Part shown: positions 53,075 through 64,000 of the stretch, piece by piece
How the letters are laid out: the number at the start of each line of letters is the position of its first letter
Numbering within the stretch: the stretch's first letter is position 1
Assembly (NCBI RefSeq): GCF_032062105.1
Contig: NW_026926647.1
Location: 186,001 to 250,000 of the forward strand
Direction of reading: 5' to 3'
From: Saccostrea cucullata
Taxonomy: Eukaryota
Length of the DNA stretch: 64,000 nucleotides
The notes under the pieces: generated by a model
Seen by the model: only the letters and a program-made list of their open reading frames with translations
Told to the model about the DNA's origin: nothing
Database searches by the model: none
Translations under genes and position numbers: made by a program

Positions 53075-53227
53075 ATGTTTCGTTTTGTGGTATTCTTGAT
53101 ATGGACTTGTTTTGCTCTTCGGATACATTCGGCACGCCTCTTTGATCCGACACCCCGGAATGCCCTCTGGACTTACTCATCCCTCTTGGACAATGGCGGC
53201 TCAGTTCTTGATTGTGGAGGAATAGAT
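53075..53227 (+). CDS. AA15-like LPMO (chitin-binding type 4) domain protein, coding exon 1
   Basis: MFRFVVFLIWTCFALRIHSARLFDPTPRNALWTYSSLLDNGGSVLDCGGID|GTAAGT: signal peptide plus the RLxDPxxRxxxW and CGG motifs; phase 0. Confidence 0.88.
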
Positions 53228-56046
53228 GTAAGTTGTTAATTGTGCTTGTCAGAGAGAGGCTCACTTAAATCAGGTCTTTTGTAGCAGTGAATCTGAGTTA
53301 TCTGAGAGAAATATATGAGGTTGAATAGATTTTATATCTACCAGTATACTTTTTTCAGTCACTGTCAGAAATCGGAGAAAACAACTGACAAATTTTCAAA
53401 TAACTGGTACTTTCTGTGAATCTTAACAAAAGACTTTGTCTGATAGTAAAATTCCAAGCTCTGTCATATATATAGTGAAGAGATCTGAAAAAATTGGAAT
53501 TGTTATAAAAATTATTACGTATTGAGTACTTATCAGATTTTGAAATAGACAACACGAAAAAAATGTCTAATGGTATATGAAGAAACTGATGTGATTTATA
53601 GTTAAAAAATGTTTCCCCTAAATCCCATTGTACAGTAGTTAACTTCCTTTTTACGATGTTTGTTTAAAAGAACTGGTAATTACTGTACAAAATAGTATAA
53701 ATTTGACAGATTAAATGTTGAGGATAAATAGAAATATGTTTCTTTATAGACAAGTGACAAAGTTATGTTGAATAAATGTCATCAATTATAGTTTATTAAT
53801 TGAATTAACACGAATCAAAAGGGAATAAAATTAATTAATTAATTGCTACACTGTCAGGTCCTTTATCATCGTTATTTTAGGAAAATAATAAGGCTTTCAA
53901 ACTACAATAAACATTGAAATACTTCATTGTCGTTAATATGCTTATGTCGTATTAACCTGCTGAATAAATCCAATTAATGCAATTAAGAAAGTTAAAGACG
54001 TGATCTGAAGTGCTTTAATTATTTTATATTAATTTACTGACTCATAATTCTTAACATAATTTGGTTTTGACGTGCTGAATATAAATTGCCAACGAAAAAT
54101 ATACCTTCTACGTTTCGCATGTATACGTAGCCATCGCCCTTTCAGCATTTCAATCTATTTATTATTTATATAAGGAAACCCTTTGTCACAAATCATTATC
54201 TAAAGAGTATTTTATGAATAGTTTTCTTTTGTATTAACTGATCTTAATATAATTCACCTTAACCACATCACTCGCACTGTACGGTTACTTGTGGTTAAGG
54301 ATACAAGTATGATAAAATAATTAATCAAAAATCAAACCAGAGAGTGAATTTATTTCTAATAAAATAAATGTTATATTCATAAACTTTTTCAAAAAACGTT
54401 TAAAAGACAACCCAAATATTTTGGAAGACATGAGTTAATACAGAACAAGTGAAATAAATCAGGAAAAAAATAGTCTCTACATAATGCAACTCTTTTTACA
54501 TCTGTTTAAAAGAAACACCTGAAGCGATTGAAATACATATTTATAATTTATATCACAAGGAAATATATCGTTAATGGGCCTGGTACAAATGCTGCCATTA
54601 ATTATCACACTGACAAAAGAAGTGAAGAAGATAACTCTTATCCGCCCAACGGAAGAAAATCCCGCTTAACGTAGTTTTTAATTACAAAAATACAGCTTTT
54701 TTCTCCCATACAAAATGGACACGTTTTCAAAGCAATTGTAGAGAAAAAATGTTAAGAGAAATACTTTTCTTCTTAGTAATTCCCCACTCTCCCTCTCTCC
54801 CTCATAGGAGTATGTTACACTCTTTTAAAATTTCTTAGGTACAGTTAAGGTAATATGTCTAAAAACAAGGTGGATGGACATGTCGTGTGCATTTGGTTTG
54901 TCAAAAAAGTGAATATTTCAATTAGAATCATAGAATTGTTTTGTAAACAAAATTCCATTTAAGAAGTAATTCCATCATACACATTTGAAGTTGGGGTATA
55001 TCACACGCCATGTTCGCCCAAGTTCTTTATATATAAAATGTATGTCAGGCGAAAGTACTTTGACTTCAACAATCAATCTTGAACAATTTCGTTAAAGTCT
55101 GTATTATTAGACATGCACTGAATTCTAACGACACTCTGTGGTTTCAAAAACTTAATAAAATTTTCTCCACATGTCAGGTGCGTGCAGAAAAGGAATTGTA
55201 TTTTATTCATAATATGTAGAAATGTTATCATTCTGACACGTCGGTGATTGATTTCACCTTAATTATAGAAATTTACGAGTCCTTGTCATTTATAAATATT
55301 TAACAAATCACAATAATCAATTCTGAATTTACTGATTTATTGCTTTAAGAAGGTTATCTCGAGAATTTAGAAGGAAAAAAAAAACACTTCCTCTACCAAA
55401 CCCAAAATTTTTGCTAAAATTTGAGTACAACTTCTAATTCCAACGTCAGAAATGTGACTTAAGGTTCGTGAACCATCTGCTCATAAGTATAAAATGTTGC
55501 TTTAACATTGTTGATTTATATTAGATAAAAATAATATATGTAAAATGCAAAGAATTTTATCAAATCTTGCGTTGCAAAATAAAAAAGAAAAGAAAGAATT
55601 TTACTTGACAAATCTATGAAGGAATGTGAAACATTTATGTTATTCAAAGTTGTCCCTGTTATCAGAGTAACAATGTACCTTAAATAACTTTGCATGTGAC
55701 AAGGACAGAGCGAGTAAAAATTTAAGAGGTGAAGATTTAATGTACAATCTGTTTTCGCGAATAAAATATATATGTGAAAATATTCAAATATATACATATT
55801 AAACTAAGTATTACATTTGTACTGTGCCCATTCGCTTTTGTCTTTAGTAATTAAGTCTTAAAATTCCTTTGCGTACATGTACCTACAGGCACGTTAAACG
55901 AAATAACTTTATAACAATGTATTTTTCACACTTCTTGTGTCCTTGAAACTTCAAGCTCTCTTATTCATGCAAGATGAATTTAATGAAATAATCTCAAAAT
56001 AAAACAAAGAAATAATGATATTAATATATATGATTAATTTTCACAG

Positions 56047-56419
56047 AGACAATGGAATTTGAATGGCGGGAAATGTGGTGTTTGCGGGGATCCCTGGGAT
56101 GGATTACGTCTCCATGAAGATGGCGGCAAATACGGACAGGGAATTGTGGGAGGAATATACAGAACCGGAAGTACTGTTCTGTTTACTATTGAAAACCCAG
56201 AAAGAATTGGAGGAGAAATCGAATTCAAGCTATGTGACGTCACAGAAAAGGGACAAGATCTTCACCAGAGCTGTTTCGACGAACATGTTCTGCTGTTTGC
56301 GGACACCAAGAAGACGAGTCATCGTGTGAAATCTCATGAGGGTTTCCTTGATGCTCATGTTCAACTTCCGGCTGGGCTTGTCTGTCAGCATTGTGTTTTA
56401 CAGTTGACATTCATACAAG
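56047..56419 (+). CDS. AA15-like LPMO domain protein, coding exon 2
   Basis: Acceptor tttcacag. RQWNLNGGKCGVCGDPWDG..GGKYGQGIVGGIYRTG..EFKLC..QSCFDEHVL..VQLPAGLVCQHCVLQ. Donor G|GTAAAT, phase 1. Confidence 0.92.
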
Positions 56420-58582
56420 GTAAATAACACTTGAATGTATTTTGTACATAAAGATAGCTTTTTTATTATATAAATCGCCTTATGTTATGGTTAAATATTC
56501 CAACAACTCATTTGAACATCACGATTAAAAATGTAAGACATTTATATGTAAGGACCCCAGTTAGATACAATTGGATGCAACACTTTTCTTAAGATCTTAA
56601 AAAAGATATTAATACTCGTATGATATATTTCTTCATTTATAAAATTAGGGACATGCATTCTCCCAACATAAAATGGAGACCTATGTTATTGACGTTATGT
56701 GTAGAATATAAATCAACTTTCTTTTCATAATTACATGTACATGTCTGTGCCATAGGAGGCATGCACCTTTGAATTTTAATTAATCAAATTGAAATACCAT
56801 TTTATTTTCAACCTAGGTATTTTTTCACATTTTACCAATTAAATAATTTTCAGATAAATATATGCATAGTCTTCTGATAGACTGGTTTTCTCCACAAAAG
56901 TATTTCAACAATGAAATCTTGTATTCAGCTCTCGAGTTGCATGTAAATGTGACATATGAATTAAAAAAAATTTTATTATACAGAACTGCAATAAAAGGAC
57001 AAAAACAGAGCCACAATTTTTCAAGGCGTGTTTAAAACCAATTAAGTAAATTTAATTAGTTAAGGAAATCTTGTATTTTATATAACTTGACAGATATGCA
57101 TAATTTTATATCTTGTCGAGAGTTTTTAAGCGTTAAAATTTAAACATATATGACGGTAAAGACGATATAATTTTTAACGTGTGCAGAATGTTGATTAAGT
57201 TGAATTTAATTTAAGTTTTTGGTCTTATTTTTTTTGCAAAAATATTTAATGGTTGTATTAGTTTCTATGGGATATATTTATCCCCAAAATCCTAGCTAAC
57301 AAAAAAAAATTTCTTACTTTTCATTAAACCTACACCGAAAGAAAAACCTAGTGAATTTAACTATTGTGTTTCGTAAAGCGTTGGTCGTGATTAGTCAACT
57401 TTCAGTTTACTGGTTAAAATAGTGAGTTGTGGAGCGGGGGTTTTCATTGTCAAAGTTACCATCAACTAAATTTATGTTTTGCAATATCTGGTAAAACTAC
57501 TAATATTCCAGGTAATGATTGTATGGAATAAATATATAACTAGTTATTTTTTTAATCATGCTTTGCCGTCTAATATTCCATTAAGAAAAGCATTTTTTTT
57601 GGTTTGTTTTGTGTTGTTCTTTTGTTTGAGATCTTCAGATTAATTTATTCATGATATAACCTTTCAAAGAATTTGATTTTTGGTCTTTGGATAAAAAAGT
57701 AAAGTATGAAGAATTGAACATCAACCACTATCTATCAAATATTTTGTTAATTAGTGAAATACTGAATCTCTGGTCAATTATAATCAAATGGTAATAACAA
57801 GTACTCATTTAATTCATTAATTTCAATTCTAAAAAAATACATGTCTGAATTTTTTATGAAACTTTAACTGAATGATGGGTATTTTTGACATTTAAGATGA
57901 CACTTTAAATGCAGTTGTTCGGATTTCGTCTTGCATAATGTTTCAGAAATTAGAATCGTGCTCTTCTAAATTACAGAAGTTAGGCTCATCCCTATTTACG
58001 TTTTACAATAGCATTCATCAAAATGCGGCAAGAATACTAAGTTAAACTTTCCCTGAAATGCGCCAATGTAAGTTGAGCACCAGTGCCGACCTGTTGGATT
58101 TAGACAGCTTGCAATTAATTTACTTTTTACACGTTTTAAAATTCAAGAAAAGGTACTGAATGATAAAATCAAAGATGCGCGTCTTTCGAAATCAGTAGCT
58201 ACTTTTTAAAACGTAAATGCACATATCATTTAAATATGCAGTCAAACACTAAAAACTGGTACTTTTTATAATCTTCATGTATATGCAAATAGCATTAAAA
58301 GGTAGATAAACACTTAAAATGAACTTTTTGTGATGTATATGCATCAAAATACAGATTGACATATTTTTGAATTTTAAAAATTCAAATACATTCACATTTT
58401 TTTTGGCACTTTTCAGCTATTAAAAAGTATGAATGATTAAAAAAAATTTAAATTGTTGTAGTTTGAATTTATTGCTTTTATCTTATAAAAAGTTAGAAAA
58501 TTGTTATAAAACGATAAAGTTTGCAAAATAACATAAGTTCCTATGATATGTATTTCATTCAATATTTTCTCGTCTTTTGTAG

Positions 58583-61500
58583 ATAATAACGAATGTCCTG
58601 AATGTGTGGAAAAACGAACCATCCGCAATTGCGCAGATATACAAATAACCCCAGGAAAAAGCCGACAAAAGCGACAGGTACAAGGGTGGAAAAACCAACA
58701 ACCTGATCAAACTAACCTGGGTAAGAGAGTTGAATGGCTCGGAGTACAGGCCAAAAAAGCAGCAGCCGCACATGCCACAGCCAAAAAGCCAACGGTGATG
58801 AAGGATGCAGAGATATACAGAACAGAGCTGAAAAAGGTAGAGTCAATTGCCCCAAAACCCACCCCACCAAGACATCTGAACGGCAGACAACAACATTTCT
58901 ACCAACTTCAACATCAGAGAGCGCTCCATAGGAATCAAAATCGGCAATTTGGCCAGCAACAGAACTCTGGGCCTTCACTATATAGGCATAATTCTGAAGT
59001 ATTATCTAGCAGGGCAAGTAAAAGCAATTTCAAGCTCACACAGGAAGCAAGGCCCAAGAAACCAAAGAAGAATCAGGTAGAACCGTCTCCCGCGTTTATT
59101 AATGCTGATCCCAAACCAACACAGCCGTCACAGCAGAAACCAACACCAACGCAACATTCTCAACAGCAGTCAACTCCAAATAATCAGGTTAACCACCATC
59201 ATCATAAACAACACAAAGCAGCGAACATAATTCAAAACAATGCAAGACCGACAAACCAACCAGTACATATGTATCCCAACAAGCAACACCAGCAACACCA
59301 AAATCAACCTATGTACAACAATAATCAACAACGACATCAAAATCAGTTCAACCATCGCAATCAAAATTTCGCCCGCCAACAACGCTACCAGCAATCTCGT
59401 AATTTCAACAATCAATGGAACATGCATAGATGGAATCAAAATAATAATAAATTCCAACAAAGCCAACACCAAAGAAACTCACTTTCGCAATCACGCCAAC
59501 AGCCCACAAAGCCATCCCCTTCCATGGATGCTGTTGGGGGTGCATTCAGTTCACAGTTCGATAAACCATCTGGGGGACTCTCTAGCATGCCTTCAGAAAA
59601 TCCGAACAAACAACCGTTCAACGACATGGTAGCAAAGACGCATACTGGTGGTTTTCTATCCTCTCAAGATAGTTTGATACCAAGGTCCTCAAATCCGAAC
59701 TCTTTTCATAATGGAAGACGACCTATAAGTCCTCCTTCATCTGGACTATATCCCACTAATGACGTTGTACCCTCTGTGTCTGCAGGAAAACCACCTCTAA
59801 GCAACTTTAAGGGAGACACTCCAATTTCGATAGACCGTCCAGCTAAAGGAATGAATTCTGACACAAAATTTGTAAGAAATATCATTCAACCAGCTGGATT
59901 TAAAGAAATTCCCCATTTAGATTTTGTGCATGCTCCAGAGGTTCAAAGACAGCGCATAGGTCCAAAATCTAACCAGAAACATGTACCGTCTACAACAGTT
60001 TCTCCCAAGGACGCACAGTGGATGGCACAATCTAACTACATGCCTAAACCACAGCAGACATGGAACAATAATGTTCCAAATCAACAATCATGGCAAAAAC
60101 CAGCTTCTGAAGGAGGAGCCCAACCAGTAGAGACACAACAGTCTTTTGTTCTTAACAAAAGGCCAATGCAATCAAATTCAGCATCCAAAAGCATTAAACA
60201 ACCAATTAGAACACCTACAGAGGTTCCGATAAAAGTCCAACCTAATCCACAGTGGTTTAATCCACAACCCCGACAACCTCAACAAGCAAATATCCAACGC
60301 ATAAATAGCCAACAGGGTTGGCTCAACAATGCGCAAGTGTCTCCAACTCAATCATCAATCAGAAGACAAGATCAGCCACAAAACCAACAATGGAATAATA
60401 AACCACCACAAGCAGCCAATTCACAACCACAACGATCTCTGGAAAAAGCGCCAAATCAAAATATGAATTTGAACAACCAAATGCAGAATATACCGCCAAT
60501 GCCTACACAAACTTCAAACAATCAGGCTATGAACCAAAAAACTCGAAAAAATCAAATTAATCCACTACAACAGCAGCAACCTAGGAACAAGTTTCAGGAA
60601 AAGCAACCTTCAATTCAGCAAAATCCACCACAGCAATGGCAGCAACAACAGAACATGAACGGACCTCCGGCGCAGGGAATTCAAAAAACCCAAATGATAC
60701 ACACTAGAGTTCAACAACAACTACCTTCAGAAATGCCTCCACAGCAACAGCAGTGGATGAACCGGAATTGGCAAGCACAAGGAAATCAACAATCAAATCC
60801 CTACCCATCTTCAGCACCCATGACAAGTAATCAGGCAGGAAACCCACCATACAGGGTGAGGAAGAATAAAAAACCTTTTAGTTTGAACGCCGATCCACAA
60901 GCAATGAGATGGAGTCCAAAAGTGGCAAGACAATTTTTTGGTGGACTTACTGTATACGACCCAAATGGAAGTCCATCATCAAATAAACCGAAAGCTTCAC
61001 CACCAAGTCCTCCTCAAAGGCCAATCTCTACTCCTGCCCCAGCTATAGCTCCATCACAACCAGTTTCTTCTCAAATCGTTAAGAAATGGAACTCTGTACA
61101 AGCTCCCGCTGCACCAGTTGTTCCTAATCAGATCCAACAATCTGCCGTTCAGAGTGTTCCATCCCAGATAAACAGGAGTGTCAATCCCCCAAACTACGCT
61201 CAACAGCAACAACCTCAGCCAACCCAAAATATTGCACCACCAGGACTTGGACAGCAACCAAACCAACCTCAAAATGCTATACCTCCTTCATATATTCCTC
61301 AACAACAGCAACAGCTACAAATTCAGAATGCATCTCCGTCCCAACAATTACAACAGACACAACAAAATCAAAATACTGTTCCACAAATGCAGAATGCACC
61401 TTCTCCCCCACAAGTACAACAGACACCACAAATTCAAAACAATGTCCCACAAATACAGAGTGCGGCACAAGGTCAAACTCAAAATAAACCTACAAAAATC

Positions 61501-64000
61501 ATGACAAATAAACTTATTGCTGGTTCCAACATCAAAGGAATTAATTCACCCTTGTTTGTTCTTCAAACAAAAGCAGATTTAAACAAACATTTGGACAAAA
61601 TGGAAACACCTTCCAGCACAAAGAGCACTGATCAAATGTTGAACATTGGGGAATATGACACTGGGTTTAAAGGTAATAAAAATCCATTATATGTGGTTGG
61701 TGCACCTCTCAAAGTTCACGATCCCAGTCCAGAACCCTCTCCTCAGATAGAAATAATTCCAAATCAGTCGAGTCGTGTAATTCCGACGCAGAACAACGTA
61801 CCAAAGAATCAACAACCACAGCAACTAGCGATTCAAGGTCAACAAAACATGCAAACCCCTACAACTCAAAATCAATCACCACAACAAGGTGTTGTTCTTG
61901 GACAACAGCCACAACAAGTTATTTTAGGTCAACAAAATCCGATTTCAACTCCTTCTCCGACCGTTGTTCAGACCACTGAAGCCCCACGTCAATTTAATCC
62001 CTTTGCGGGTAGTCCACGTCCAGTTCCAAACAATAAAGAATTAATGGGTCAACGTCACCTCCCATTATCAGGACAACAAAACTCGTCACCTTTCCGTGGT
62101 TTTAATTCAGCTTTGGGAAGGGGTGGACCTAACGTACCAACCCCAACGACCCCAAATCCAGCGACAACTCCACAATATCGACAAGGTAGTTTGGGTGCGC
62201 TTGGAAGAGGAATGACACAAAGTAACTTACAAGGTGCTATTTTAGCTGCAGAAACAACAACAACAACAACACGATCCCCACCAGTCATAAGTGCTAGACA
62301 ACAATATTTCTCTGCACAAAGAAAGGGAATGTTCCGGCCAACATTCGCTCGTAAATTACCTCAACGATATCCACAATATCCTCAAAGAAACAATCAGCAG
62401 TCATTCCAATCAAGAATGGTACAAAATAATCAACAGCCTGTAATTTTGCAACCACAAGTAAGAGGACGTCCAGAGAACACAACAGAAAGTCCCCAAATGC
62501 AACCACAATTCGCACAGAATAACATGAATAGGATGACCAATTCAAGATTTTCTAGAAATATGCAAATACCGTATCCAAATAGACCGAGATCATCTACCAT
62601 TTCTCAGCAGAATCCTCGGCCAAAACAGTTTCCTCAACGTCCTTTATCAAACCCACAGACTTCTGGCTCTCAGTTAAGTAGCTGGAAAAATCCCTCTCCT
62701 ATGCAGAACCCACAGTTTGTTAGAAGACAACAATCTAGTCTTTCTCAAAGGTTTAATCAAAAAGGTAATCTTAATTTAATTGGAGTAACACCAGGTCCTA
62801 CATCAAATCAGGGTAATGTTAAGGAAGCCAGAGTTTTAGTAAATCAGAATGTTCCCTCACCAACACCTCCACAGATGAAACAACCTAATCCTGTTTCTAA
62901 TCCAAGGTCCAAAAATATGCTTGAATCTAACACTGCTAAAAGTGGTCCTAAACCCCAAAGAGGTCCACAACAACCACAGGCTAGAGAACCACAAAGTCCT
63001 CTACAAAGTGTTCCAAAACCAATCGTAAGGGAACCTCAACCAATCAAAGGGCAATATCAACCTCAGATGATTAAAAAACCTTCGCTTAGTCGGAAAGCTT
63101 TTGAAACGGGCAGCAGTAAATCTAATGCATTTAGTTCATTTTTAATGAATGGGGGTCATAAAACTGTTGTTGCAGCAGCAAATGCAATTGAAAAGCCGCA
63201 GCAAGGTTTGAAGAACTCTGTTAAACGAGCAGAATATGTTGCACCTGTCGATGCCATTAGTCCTGCAAAAGAGTCAAATACAGTTTATTCCAATCCCCTG
63301 CATTATCACAATCAAAGACGGGGTTTTGGAATTGTGTCAGGGGGTCTTTCGGCGTCAAGGTTAGATCCAAATTCGGTAAAAAGAGCCCAACAACGCCTTC
63401 GTCCATCCGAGAGTCCAAAACTTTCGCATCTTGGAAAAATACTTGGAAAAGAACAGCCTGCACAAAGACTTGGCAGCTACCAAAATGTTCTCCGCCAGGC
63501 AGGGGTAACTCCAGACATCAAAAATAGTGAAGTTCTATGGTCTGTTCGGACAACACCTGCGGAGTCTAAGATCATTTATCAAGACGCCATTCAGAATCAA
63601 GCTATTGCCGAAAAGGGCCCAGCAATACCAGGATACTACAGAAGAGACCTTGTTGTTGAAAAGCAACCACAGTCCGTAGTGCCGGAAGTTAAGTCCACAA
63701 ATATTAAAACGCAACAGTCCATGATGAGTGGTGGACCTCTGCCAATGGAAATGGAAAAATCACGGAACAGTGTTAGGAATAACGCTCATCCCCAAGTAAA
63801 GCCTAAAGCAGTCAATTATCCACAGATACCCGGCTCACAGAACGTACCCGCAGTGCCAGGAATTCCTCGTGAAGCGCCGGCTAAGATGGCGGTTGTTGAT
63901 CCTCCTGTCCAAAGAAAACAAATTAAGAAACAAAATCCTCAGCAACAAGAACATCATCAACAACAACAACAACAACAACAACAGATGCTGCTAGAAAAAC
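58583..64000 (+). CDS. AA15-like protein exon 3: end of LPMO domain plus a very long Q/P/N-rich low-complexity tail, open to the window end (>=1805 codons)
   Basis: Acceptor cttttgtag; the phase matches exon 2. DNNECPECVEKRTIRNCADIQI closes the domain, then RQKR and a CAA/CCA/AAT-rich frame. No stop seen, and the ORF track lists no terminated ORF in this frame. Confidence 0.9.

Follow-up and report, generated by a model that had tools for sequence, protein, structure and literature searches.

An expressed oyster gene that joins an AA15-like domain stripped of its copper ligands to a giant Gln/Pro-rich tail, a probable component of the mantle chitin framework

Lytic polysaccharide monooxygenases (LPMOs) are defined by a copper ion held in a histidine brace. 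In TdAA15A, the only member of family AA15 with a solved structure (PDB 5MSZ), the copper site is made of His1, His91, Ala89 and Tyr184 (PMC5823890; PMC9156745), and when the family was described in 2018 this active site was reported to be absolutely conserved across it, along with ten cysteines (PMC5823890). Around 32% of AA15 sequences continue into a disordered C-terminal region (dCTR), in some cases of more than 1,000 residues, to which no function has been assigned (PMC8615602). Here we describe a gene of the oyster Saccostrea cucullata that departs from these systems at both ends. It lies in a stretch of 64,000 nt (NCBI RefSeq assembly GCF_032062105.1, contig NW_026926647.1, positions 186,001 to 250,000 of the forward strand), hereafter the window, and encodes an AA15-like head in which the copper ligands are replaced, followed by an enormous basic tail. 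We think it probable that this is a functional oyster gene for a secreted two-part protein, with a pseudo-LPMO docking head and a giant disordered matrix tail working in the chitin framework of the mantle.

The gene consists of three exons (Table 1). As read from the sequence, exon 1 opens at the ATG and closes on GAT before GTAAGT (phase 0), exon 2 is bordered by cag/AGA and CAAG/GTAAAT (phase 1), and exon 3 remains open for 1,821 codons within the window and 1,881 in total, the remaining two forward frames reaching at most 133 codons each. Its TGA stop falls 180 nt past the window, at window-equivalent 64180-64182 (L013:1180-1182). There are no stretches of N in the gene region, and the joined product of 2,041 amino acids is identical to P0001, the stored protein model of the same contig; this model was used for the whole-protein analyses, and the exons were searched singly against databases.

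Transcript evidence comes from Logan contigs of public sequencing runs aligned to positions 56000-61999. A contig joint from 56417 to 58581 skips exactly 2,163 nt with GT..AG borders (56419/58583), both in X8, which is recorded as RNA-Seq, and in X7. Where RNA contigs run on upstream of exon 2, their loose ends agree with the final 30 nt of exon 1 except for three synonymous third-position differences, and the net length differences of the exon 3 contigs are multiples of three. Of the contig differences, 286 are unlisted, and selection was measured on genomic sequence (see below). Several of the in-frame length differences fall in repeat or CAA-type stretches of exon 3, e.g. at 61311. Contig depth within intron 2 is confined to a repeat-like piece at 57200-57800, which contigs of three runs cover. 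At both of its ends these contigs pass into unrelated sequence, and the piece resembles a transposon fragment or dispersed repeat that is expressed or present elsewhere, outside this transcript. In Crassostrea-type assemblies, 15 intron-less contigs of ~7.3 kb, each with one uninterrupted open reading frame of 2,026 amino acids, are full-length mRNAs. The gene is expressed and correctly spliced. An earlier note on this DNA, made from the letters alone, had proposed three exons splicing in frame into a secreted protein, which the splice sites, the open frame, the identity with the stored model and the RNA joints bear out. It had also considered that a transcript with a further exon might restore the copper ligands; there is no such exon between the three described here, either in the RNA contigs or in the ~7.3-kb mRNAs.

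The head has the AA15 fold. In a search with residues 1-200, the Pfam family LPMO_10 (PF03067) matches residues 20-200 at 26.2 bits, above the cut-off of 23, and TdAA15A matches residues 24-197 with an E-value of 1.5e-24. An AlphaFold model of the head, built on an alignment of 113 family sequences, reaches a predicted local distance difference test score (pLDDT) of 92.1 and a predicted template-modelling score (pTM) of 0.88; with this model, Foldseek returns 5MSZ as best match (TMq 0.88, E 1.4e-17), followed by AA10, AA13 and AA11 LPMOs. Ten cysteines follow the signal peptide, at positions 47, 61, 64, 114, 127, 164, 167, 180, 183 and 192. A broad search of public data for the family gave 1,312 matches.

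On this well-preserved scaffold the copper site has been rewritten. The ligand positions were read from alignments with 5MSZ and with the 110 closest members of the family. His91 is replaced by Ile105, at a position that is His in 93 of the 110; Ala89 is replaced by Glu103 (Ala, Ser or Thr in 102) and the Asn beside it by Arg104; the family Phe that follows His91 has become Ile109. The second-sphere Glu of the Q-E motif reads Arg187 (Glu in 92 of the 110), the axial Phe/Tyr, Tyr184 of TdAA15A, reads Ile189 (Phe or Tyr in 91), and the W-x-Y-x-x-G-N-x-W-G loop is shorter by ~8 residues. At the N-terminus, the family register H-G-R-L compares with H-S-A-R-L, and in 79 of the 110 sequences the family Arg pairs with Arg21, which leaves Ser19 at the place of His1. 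The (-3,-1) rule fits Ile17/Ser19, and exposing His18 would need Ile17 at -1, so cleavage of the signal peptide most likely falls after Ser19 and would remove His18. Whatever the cut, a histidine brace is unable to form because the second His is absent, and loss of catalysis, i.e. of histidine-brace copper and of polysaccharide oxidation, follows as a strong inference from the sequence. These alignments and the domain model are among the checks that the earlier note had proposed. Its main claims hold up: the AA15 Cys scaffold and fold are retained, with all ten cysteines; the N-terminal His is displaced and probably cleaved off; the second His is gone, the axial aromatic is Ile, QE has become KR and the loop is replaced. 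The motifs that it quoted are all present (CGVCGDPWD, EFKLC, CQHCVLQ, NCADI, (IH)SARLFDP, NPERIGGEIEF and KRTIRNCAD), with 'CGG' reading CGGID.

These replacements have been kept in other oysters. The Crassostrea/Magallana orthologs (XP_011449977, XP_052694927 and UniProt A0A8W8NLJ2) are 2,026-2,034 amino acids long, and those with a full head are 69% identical to it there, with Val at the position of the second His (His2), Ile at the axial position, and Glu103, Ile109 and Arg187 kept. Their position 21 is His, as against Arg in the window, a difference that does not bring back the register of the family. A third oyster lineage is represented by a metagenome contig with exons 2 and 3 only (L035), in which Ile stands at both the His2 and axial positions and the exon structure is the same. 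Intron positions are conserved relative to a Crassostrea-type locus (L015). In the 124 codons of exon 2, comparison with this locus gives proportions of non-synonymous and synonymous differences (pN and pS) of 0.15 and 0.70, with omega ~0.08; for the tail pN is 0.30 with pS saturated. Synonymous sites are saturated between the genera (pS 0.70-0.87), so a finite ratio is given for the head only, and pN and pS for the tail. The non-synonymous deficit in the head, the frame-keeping indels and the conserved orthologs show that the gene is not decaying. In the family tree the orthogroup is a clade with 100% support, with a long stem (1.13 substitutions per site) and short tips, a shape that agrees with an early burst of change and later constraint. 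Conserved loss of the His in other bivalves at a low ratio of non-synonymous to synonymous rates (dN/dS) was among the outcomes that the earlier note had looked to, and the replacements in both other lineages agree with it; the absence of expression and the neutral evolution that would have told against its view are contradicted by the RNA contigs and by purifying selection on the head.

A representative search of public data returned no full-length representative more than 45% identical to the head, a result to be read with the caveat that representatives lacking the head (P0002) can hide orthologs in their clusters, and the apparent restriction to oysters is for that reason unproven. A word search with exon 3 found only the model of the window itself and one ortholog cluster, and one with the head region, under length limits for long proteins, found only two Saccostrea paralogs.

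The tail is of a different nature. It contains 16% Gln, 12.5% Pro, 9% Asn, 9% Ser and 6% Lys and is free of Cys, a composition that recurs in Crassostrea. With 209 Lys and Arg against 74 Asp and Glu, it has a net charge of about +135 and an isoelectric point of ~11. Its identity to the Crassostrea-type locus is about 45-55% over aligned codons, with blocks at 0.65-0.80 and islands at 0.8. A Pfam search with residues 200-2041 returned no family. A search for tandem repeats indicates that the tail is not built of them: it found only a 66-nt unit present in 2.2 copies (61317-61463, 82% matches) and a CAA run of ~14 codons encoding poly-Gln (63943-63983). On charge-hydropathy plots 32 of 35 windows fall on the disordered side, and the AlphaFold model is of low confidence, so that the tail is predicted to be intrinsically disordered. 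A disordered tail of more than 1,770 residues had been claimed before; the one predicted here is longer than could be seen at that time because the gene extends 180 nt past the window.

Between head and tail stands the only R-x-K/R-R motif of the protein. Its counterparts are RRKR in Crassostrea and RRRR in the third lineage; QVQGW follows in every case, and the residues just before the motif vary. Since one such motif is close to what chance would give, it is its position and its conservation in three lineages that argue for a functional basic site, and we infer that a furin-type convertase may cleave there. This opens an alternative in which the head is mainly a pro-domain, or an aid to secretion and folding, that is removed at the multibasic site and whose docking on chitin plays no part; the basic Gln/Pro-rich tail would then be the working product, for example forming a matrix by coacervation, transglutaminase cross-linking or binding of polyanions. 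Several features suit it: the basic motif is followed by the same five residues in all three lineages, the tyrosines of the substrate face have been lost, and the properties of the tail (Gln 16%, Lys 6%, net charge about +130) are conserved between genera. However, no part of the protein is more conserved than the head (69% identity, pN 0.15), whose rebuilt face bears conserved charged residues, a constraint above what is usual for a disposable pro-piece. We regard this alternative as unlikely.

The link to the shell comes from the Pacific oyster C. gigas. In a single-nucleus atlas of this species, the gene G7827, whose top hit is K1QD83, appears in the list of the 30 best markers of 'Mantle Cell Type 2' (bioRxiv 10.64898/2026.05.15.723513, Supp Sheet S3). 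K1QD83 is a fragment model in the ortholog cluster (P0005) and has the same head. G7827 is detected in 59.1% of the nuclei of this type and in 0.6% of the others, with a log2 fold change of 8.42, and according to the authors the same cells carry chitin synthase, Pif-7 and a shell-gland marker (bioRxiv 10.64898/2026.05.15.723513). The ortholog is thus specific to one shell-forming mantle cell type, which lends independent support to the guess, made from the DNA alone, of a shell or mantle matrix protein. A second gene annotated as 'chitin-binding type-4' (G9111, top hit K1QZK5) marks the same cell type (Supp Sheet S3). A search of the main texts of papers by accession found none that names these proteins; tables of shell proteomes are not systematically searchable in this way.

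We therefore favour, as the probable account, a secreted docking head joined to a matrix tail, which might work as follows. 1) The AA15 head would be a pseudo-enzyme that keeps the disulphide scaffold and the beta-sandwich and in which the flat copper face has been rebuilt, mostly of residues conserved across oyster genera (Glu103, Arg/Lys104, Ile/Val105, Ile109, Arg187 and Ile189); 2) this head would most likely serve as a non-catalytic docking module for chitin or another partner in the matrix; 3) the tail, with its conserved short islands, would plausibly be the bulk part that forms the matrix or binds partners; 4) a furin-type convertase would cut the head from the tail in the secretory pathway; and 5) the protein would be made by mantle cells that also make chitin synthase and shell-matrix genes, and would take part in the chitin-based organic framework that the mantle secretes. 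The last step is considered likely because the ortholog marks a mantle cell type expressing these very genes.

Table 1. Positions of the gene, of its parts and of the replaced residues in the window, with the related exons found in the same genome.
Feature	Position	Strand	Remarks
Exon 1	53075..53227	+	Codons 1-51: start codon (ATG 53075), signal peptide and first strand of the AA15-like head; GT donor at 53228; P0001 starts here
Predicted signal peptide	53075..53131	+	Residues 1-19; Arg3 in the n-region, hydrophobic core 4-13
Codons His18-Ser19	53126..53131	+	Ser19 at the family His1 position; His18 one residue out of register
Intron 1	53228..56046	+	GT..AG; RNA contigs pass from exon 1 into exon 2 (loose ends at 56043)
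Exon 2	56047..56419	+	Carries the core of the AA15-like domain (codons 52-175 and one further base), matched by Pfam LPMO_10 and 5MSZ
Codons Glu103-Arg104-Ile105	56200..56208	+	Replace family Ala-Asn-His (Ala89 and His91 of TdAA15A); E-K-V or E-K-I in orthologs
Intron 2	56420..58582	+	2,163 nt, GT..AG; RNA contig joint
Exon 3, part in the window	58583..64000	+	Acceptor tag/AT; runs on to window-equivalent 64179; RNA contigs cover the in-window part end to end
Last strand of the head	58583..58656	+	Residues 176-200; shortened loop, Arg187, Ile189 (58621-58623), NCADI
Multibasic R-Q-K-R site	58663..58674	+	Residues 203-206; sole R-x-K/R-R in the protein; followed by invariant Q-V-Q-G-W
Gln/Pro/Asn/Ser-rich basic tail	58675..64000	+	Residues 207-2041 (1,835 aa); last 60 residues beyond the window
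Eight further AA15-like exons with a non-His second brace position	L004, L017, L018, L022, L023, L029, L031, L034		Residues M, Q, S, A, I, N, R, Y

A number of points weigh against this account. First, one list of shell matrix protein (SMP) domains from oyster shell and mantle includes another LPMO_10 protein (XP_011435856.2) but lacks this ortholog. Second, the tyrosines proposed to form the substrate-binding surface of TdAA15A are lost, Tyr24 having become Asn40 and Tyr166 falling in the deleted loop, which makes docking on chitin less secure than for a simple 'dead' LPMO. Third, what we say of binding and activity of the head derives from its sequence and its model. Fourth, the place of the signal-peptide cut was judged by rule, and cleavage after Ile17 would leave His18 at the N-terminus. 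Fifth, the mean AlphaFold pLDDT of 30.9 over the last 1,200 residues was obtained with an alignment of 4 sequences, so that a low value is weak evidence of disorder. Sixth, the expected number of R-x-K/R-R motifs in 2,041 residues is ~0.7. Seventh, the RNA contigs share 90-95% identity with the window, so that their source is a close relative or a divergent haplotype and not demonstrably the same individual.

The protein could also be a secreted mantle product that has its role outside shell building, in mucus or a surface coat or in pattern recognition, the dead LPMO fold binding microbial or other foreign polysaccharide. The mantle is also a source of mucus and of immune factors, and LPMO folds bind several polysaccharides (PMC8615602). 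The cell cluster that the ortholog marks is, on the other hand, defined by shell-gland and shell-matrix markers and by chitin synthase, and the tail, with only 8 N-glycosylation sequons, is not dominated by Ser/Thr as a mucin is. We give this possibility somewhat less credit than that of a pro-domain. Much less probable is a protein that is still a metallo-enzyme, in which an unusual cut of the signal peptide exposes His18, and His74, His131, His148 or Glu103 completes a metal site. His18 is invariant between the Saccostrea and Crassostrea proteins, and His74, His131 and His148 are conserved between both genera. Against this, a cut that frees His18 would require Ile or Val at -1, His18 is out of the His1 register, His74 and His131 are ordinary family residues found in canonical members too, and only hydrophobic or basic residues stand at the His2, axial and second-sphere positions. 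Finally, a decaying pseudogene, or an annotation artefact fusing an LPMO remnant to an unrelated low-complexity frame, might be suggested by automatic annotation, which names the orthologs inconsistently ('TET-like', 'nuclear receptor coactivator 6', 'uncharacterized'), and by a tail outside any Pfam family, and is rejected as extremely improbable, being contradicted by a frame open over 1,881 codons, by the sharing of one exon between the last beta-strand of the head and the tail, by RNA contigs across the joints and full-length mRNAs in the sister genus, and by conserved intron positions and a strong deficit of non-synonymous change.

A copper-less AA15 fold is not peculiar to this gene. The same 1.17-Gb genome contains 33 exon-level AA15 matches, and among those that cover His2 ~18 keep the His and ~9 carry I, Q, M, S, A, I, N, R or Y, so that about a third of the AA15 paralogs of this genome are devoid of it. 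These counts are upper bounds, since pairs of AA15 exons that lie on different contigs and are identical or nearly so around the match (L011/L012, L019/L020 and L026/L028) suggest haplotypes that were not collapsed. One of the exons (L017) belongs to LOC134240148 (P0018), a long-tailed protein of 1,669 amino acids. The picture is similar in all public data, where the 150 nearest cluster representatives give ~125 aligned rows with His at this position and ~25 with another residue, the latter including proteins of scallop, Dreissena, Haliotis and Lingula. In the Lingula anatina protein XP_023932961.1 (P0019), two AA15 domains stand in tandem: the canonical His, His and Phe are found in the first, and the second has Leu at His2 and no N-terminal His, so that, as judged from these residues, live and dead LPMO folds occur in one chain. 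We count at least eight changes of state at His2 on the family tree; its well-supported branches alone are still compatible with a single origin. Our searches of the literature on AA15 in bivalves and molluscs and on pseudo- or LPMO-like forms found no description of a copper-less animal AA15, and the oyster gene looks like one example of an apparently wider, undescribed class.

One may go further and suppose, as a speculation that we find doubtful, that copper-less AA15 folds are a recurrent invention of shell-bearing lophotrochozoans (bivalves, gastropods and brachiopods) and form an unrecognised class of organisers of chitin frameworks. For the present orthogroup, this would mean that the dead head attaches to chitin newly extruded by the chitin synthase of one mantle cell type, and that a convertase releases or hinges a cationic Gln/Pro-rich polymer of 1,800 residues, which would condense or be cross-linked into the organic sheet that underlies shell deposition. 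If this were true, a family of oxidative enzymes would have been converted several times into structural matrix proteins.

Our results bear on how LPMOs are recognised and counted. In this gene, the fold is under strong constraint after all the positions of the active site have been rewritten. Loss of the brace is apparently common, in which case automatic counts of 'LPMOs' in animal genomes overstate their enzymatic capacity and a function remains to be assigned to a sizeable group of pseudo-enzymes derived from LPMOs. For the study of biomineralisation, the gene is a concrete candidate to link chitin synthesis with a giant disordered matrix protein.

Set beside the known systems, the oyster protein is closest to the AA15 LPMOs, such as TdAA15A and the insect LPMO15-1, with which its head is homologous. 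They have in common the fold (TM 0.88), the scaffold of ten cysteines, an N-terminal signal peptide and the motifs P-x-x-R, C-G-x-C-G-D, E-F-x-L-C, C-V-L-Q and N-C-A-D. They differ in that His1, Ala89, His91, the Glu of Q-E and the axial Tyr/Phe are all replaced in the oyster protein, which has also lost Tyr24 and Tyr166 and has a shorter loop after C-V-L-Q. The X325 proteins retain a histidine brace that binds copper, and in this they are unlike the oyster protein, where the brace itself is gone. These LPMO-like copper proteins and the CBP21-type 'chitin-binding proteins', in their original description, are, likewise, cases of an LPMO fold in a non-oxidative role (PMC8615602). Other lophotrochozoans have further copper-less AA15-like genes, among them LOC134240148 and LOC133187056 of Saccostrea and those of scallop, Dreissena, Haliotis and Lingula, which combine the AA15 fold with a residue other than His at His2 and often with long low-complexity tails. 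They form separate lineages in a tree whose backbone is weakly supported, are at most 39% identical to this head and have tails of different composition; most of them keep the axial aromatic, and none has a multibasic site directly after the head. The tail itself finds its nearest counterpart in the dCTRs of LPMOs (Tamburrini et al. 2021, PMC8615602), in which a domain of the catalytic type is likewise followed by a long region predicted to be disordered. It has the features by which dCTRs are recognised, i.e. at least 30 amino acids, no known module and long predicted disorder. Yet the dCTRs of AA15 are enriched in Ser, Thr and Cys, redox-sensitive and polyampholytic (PMC8615602), whereas the oyster tail is Cys-free, rich in Gln, Pro and Asn, cationic and 1,835 residues long, and is attached to a copper-less domain with a multibasic site in between.

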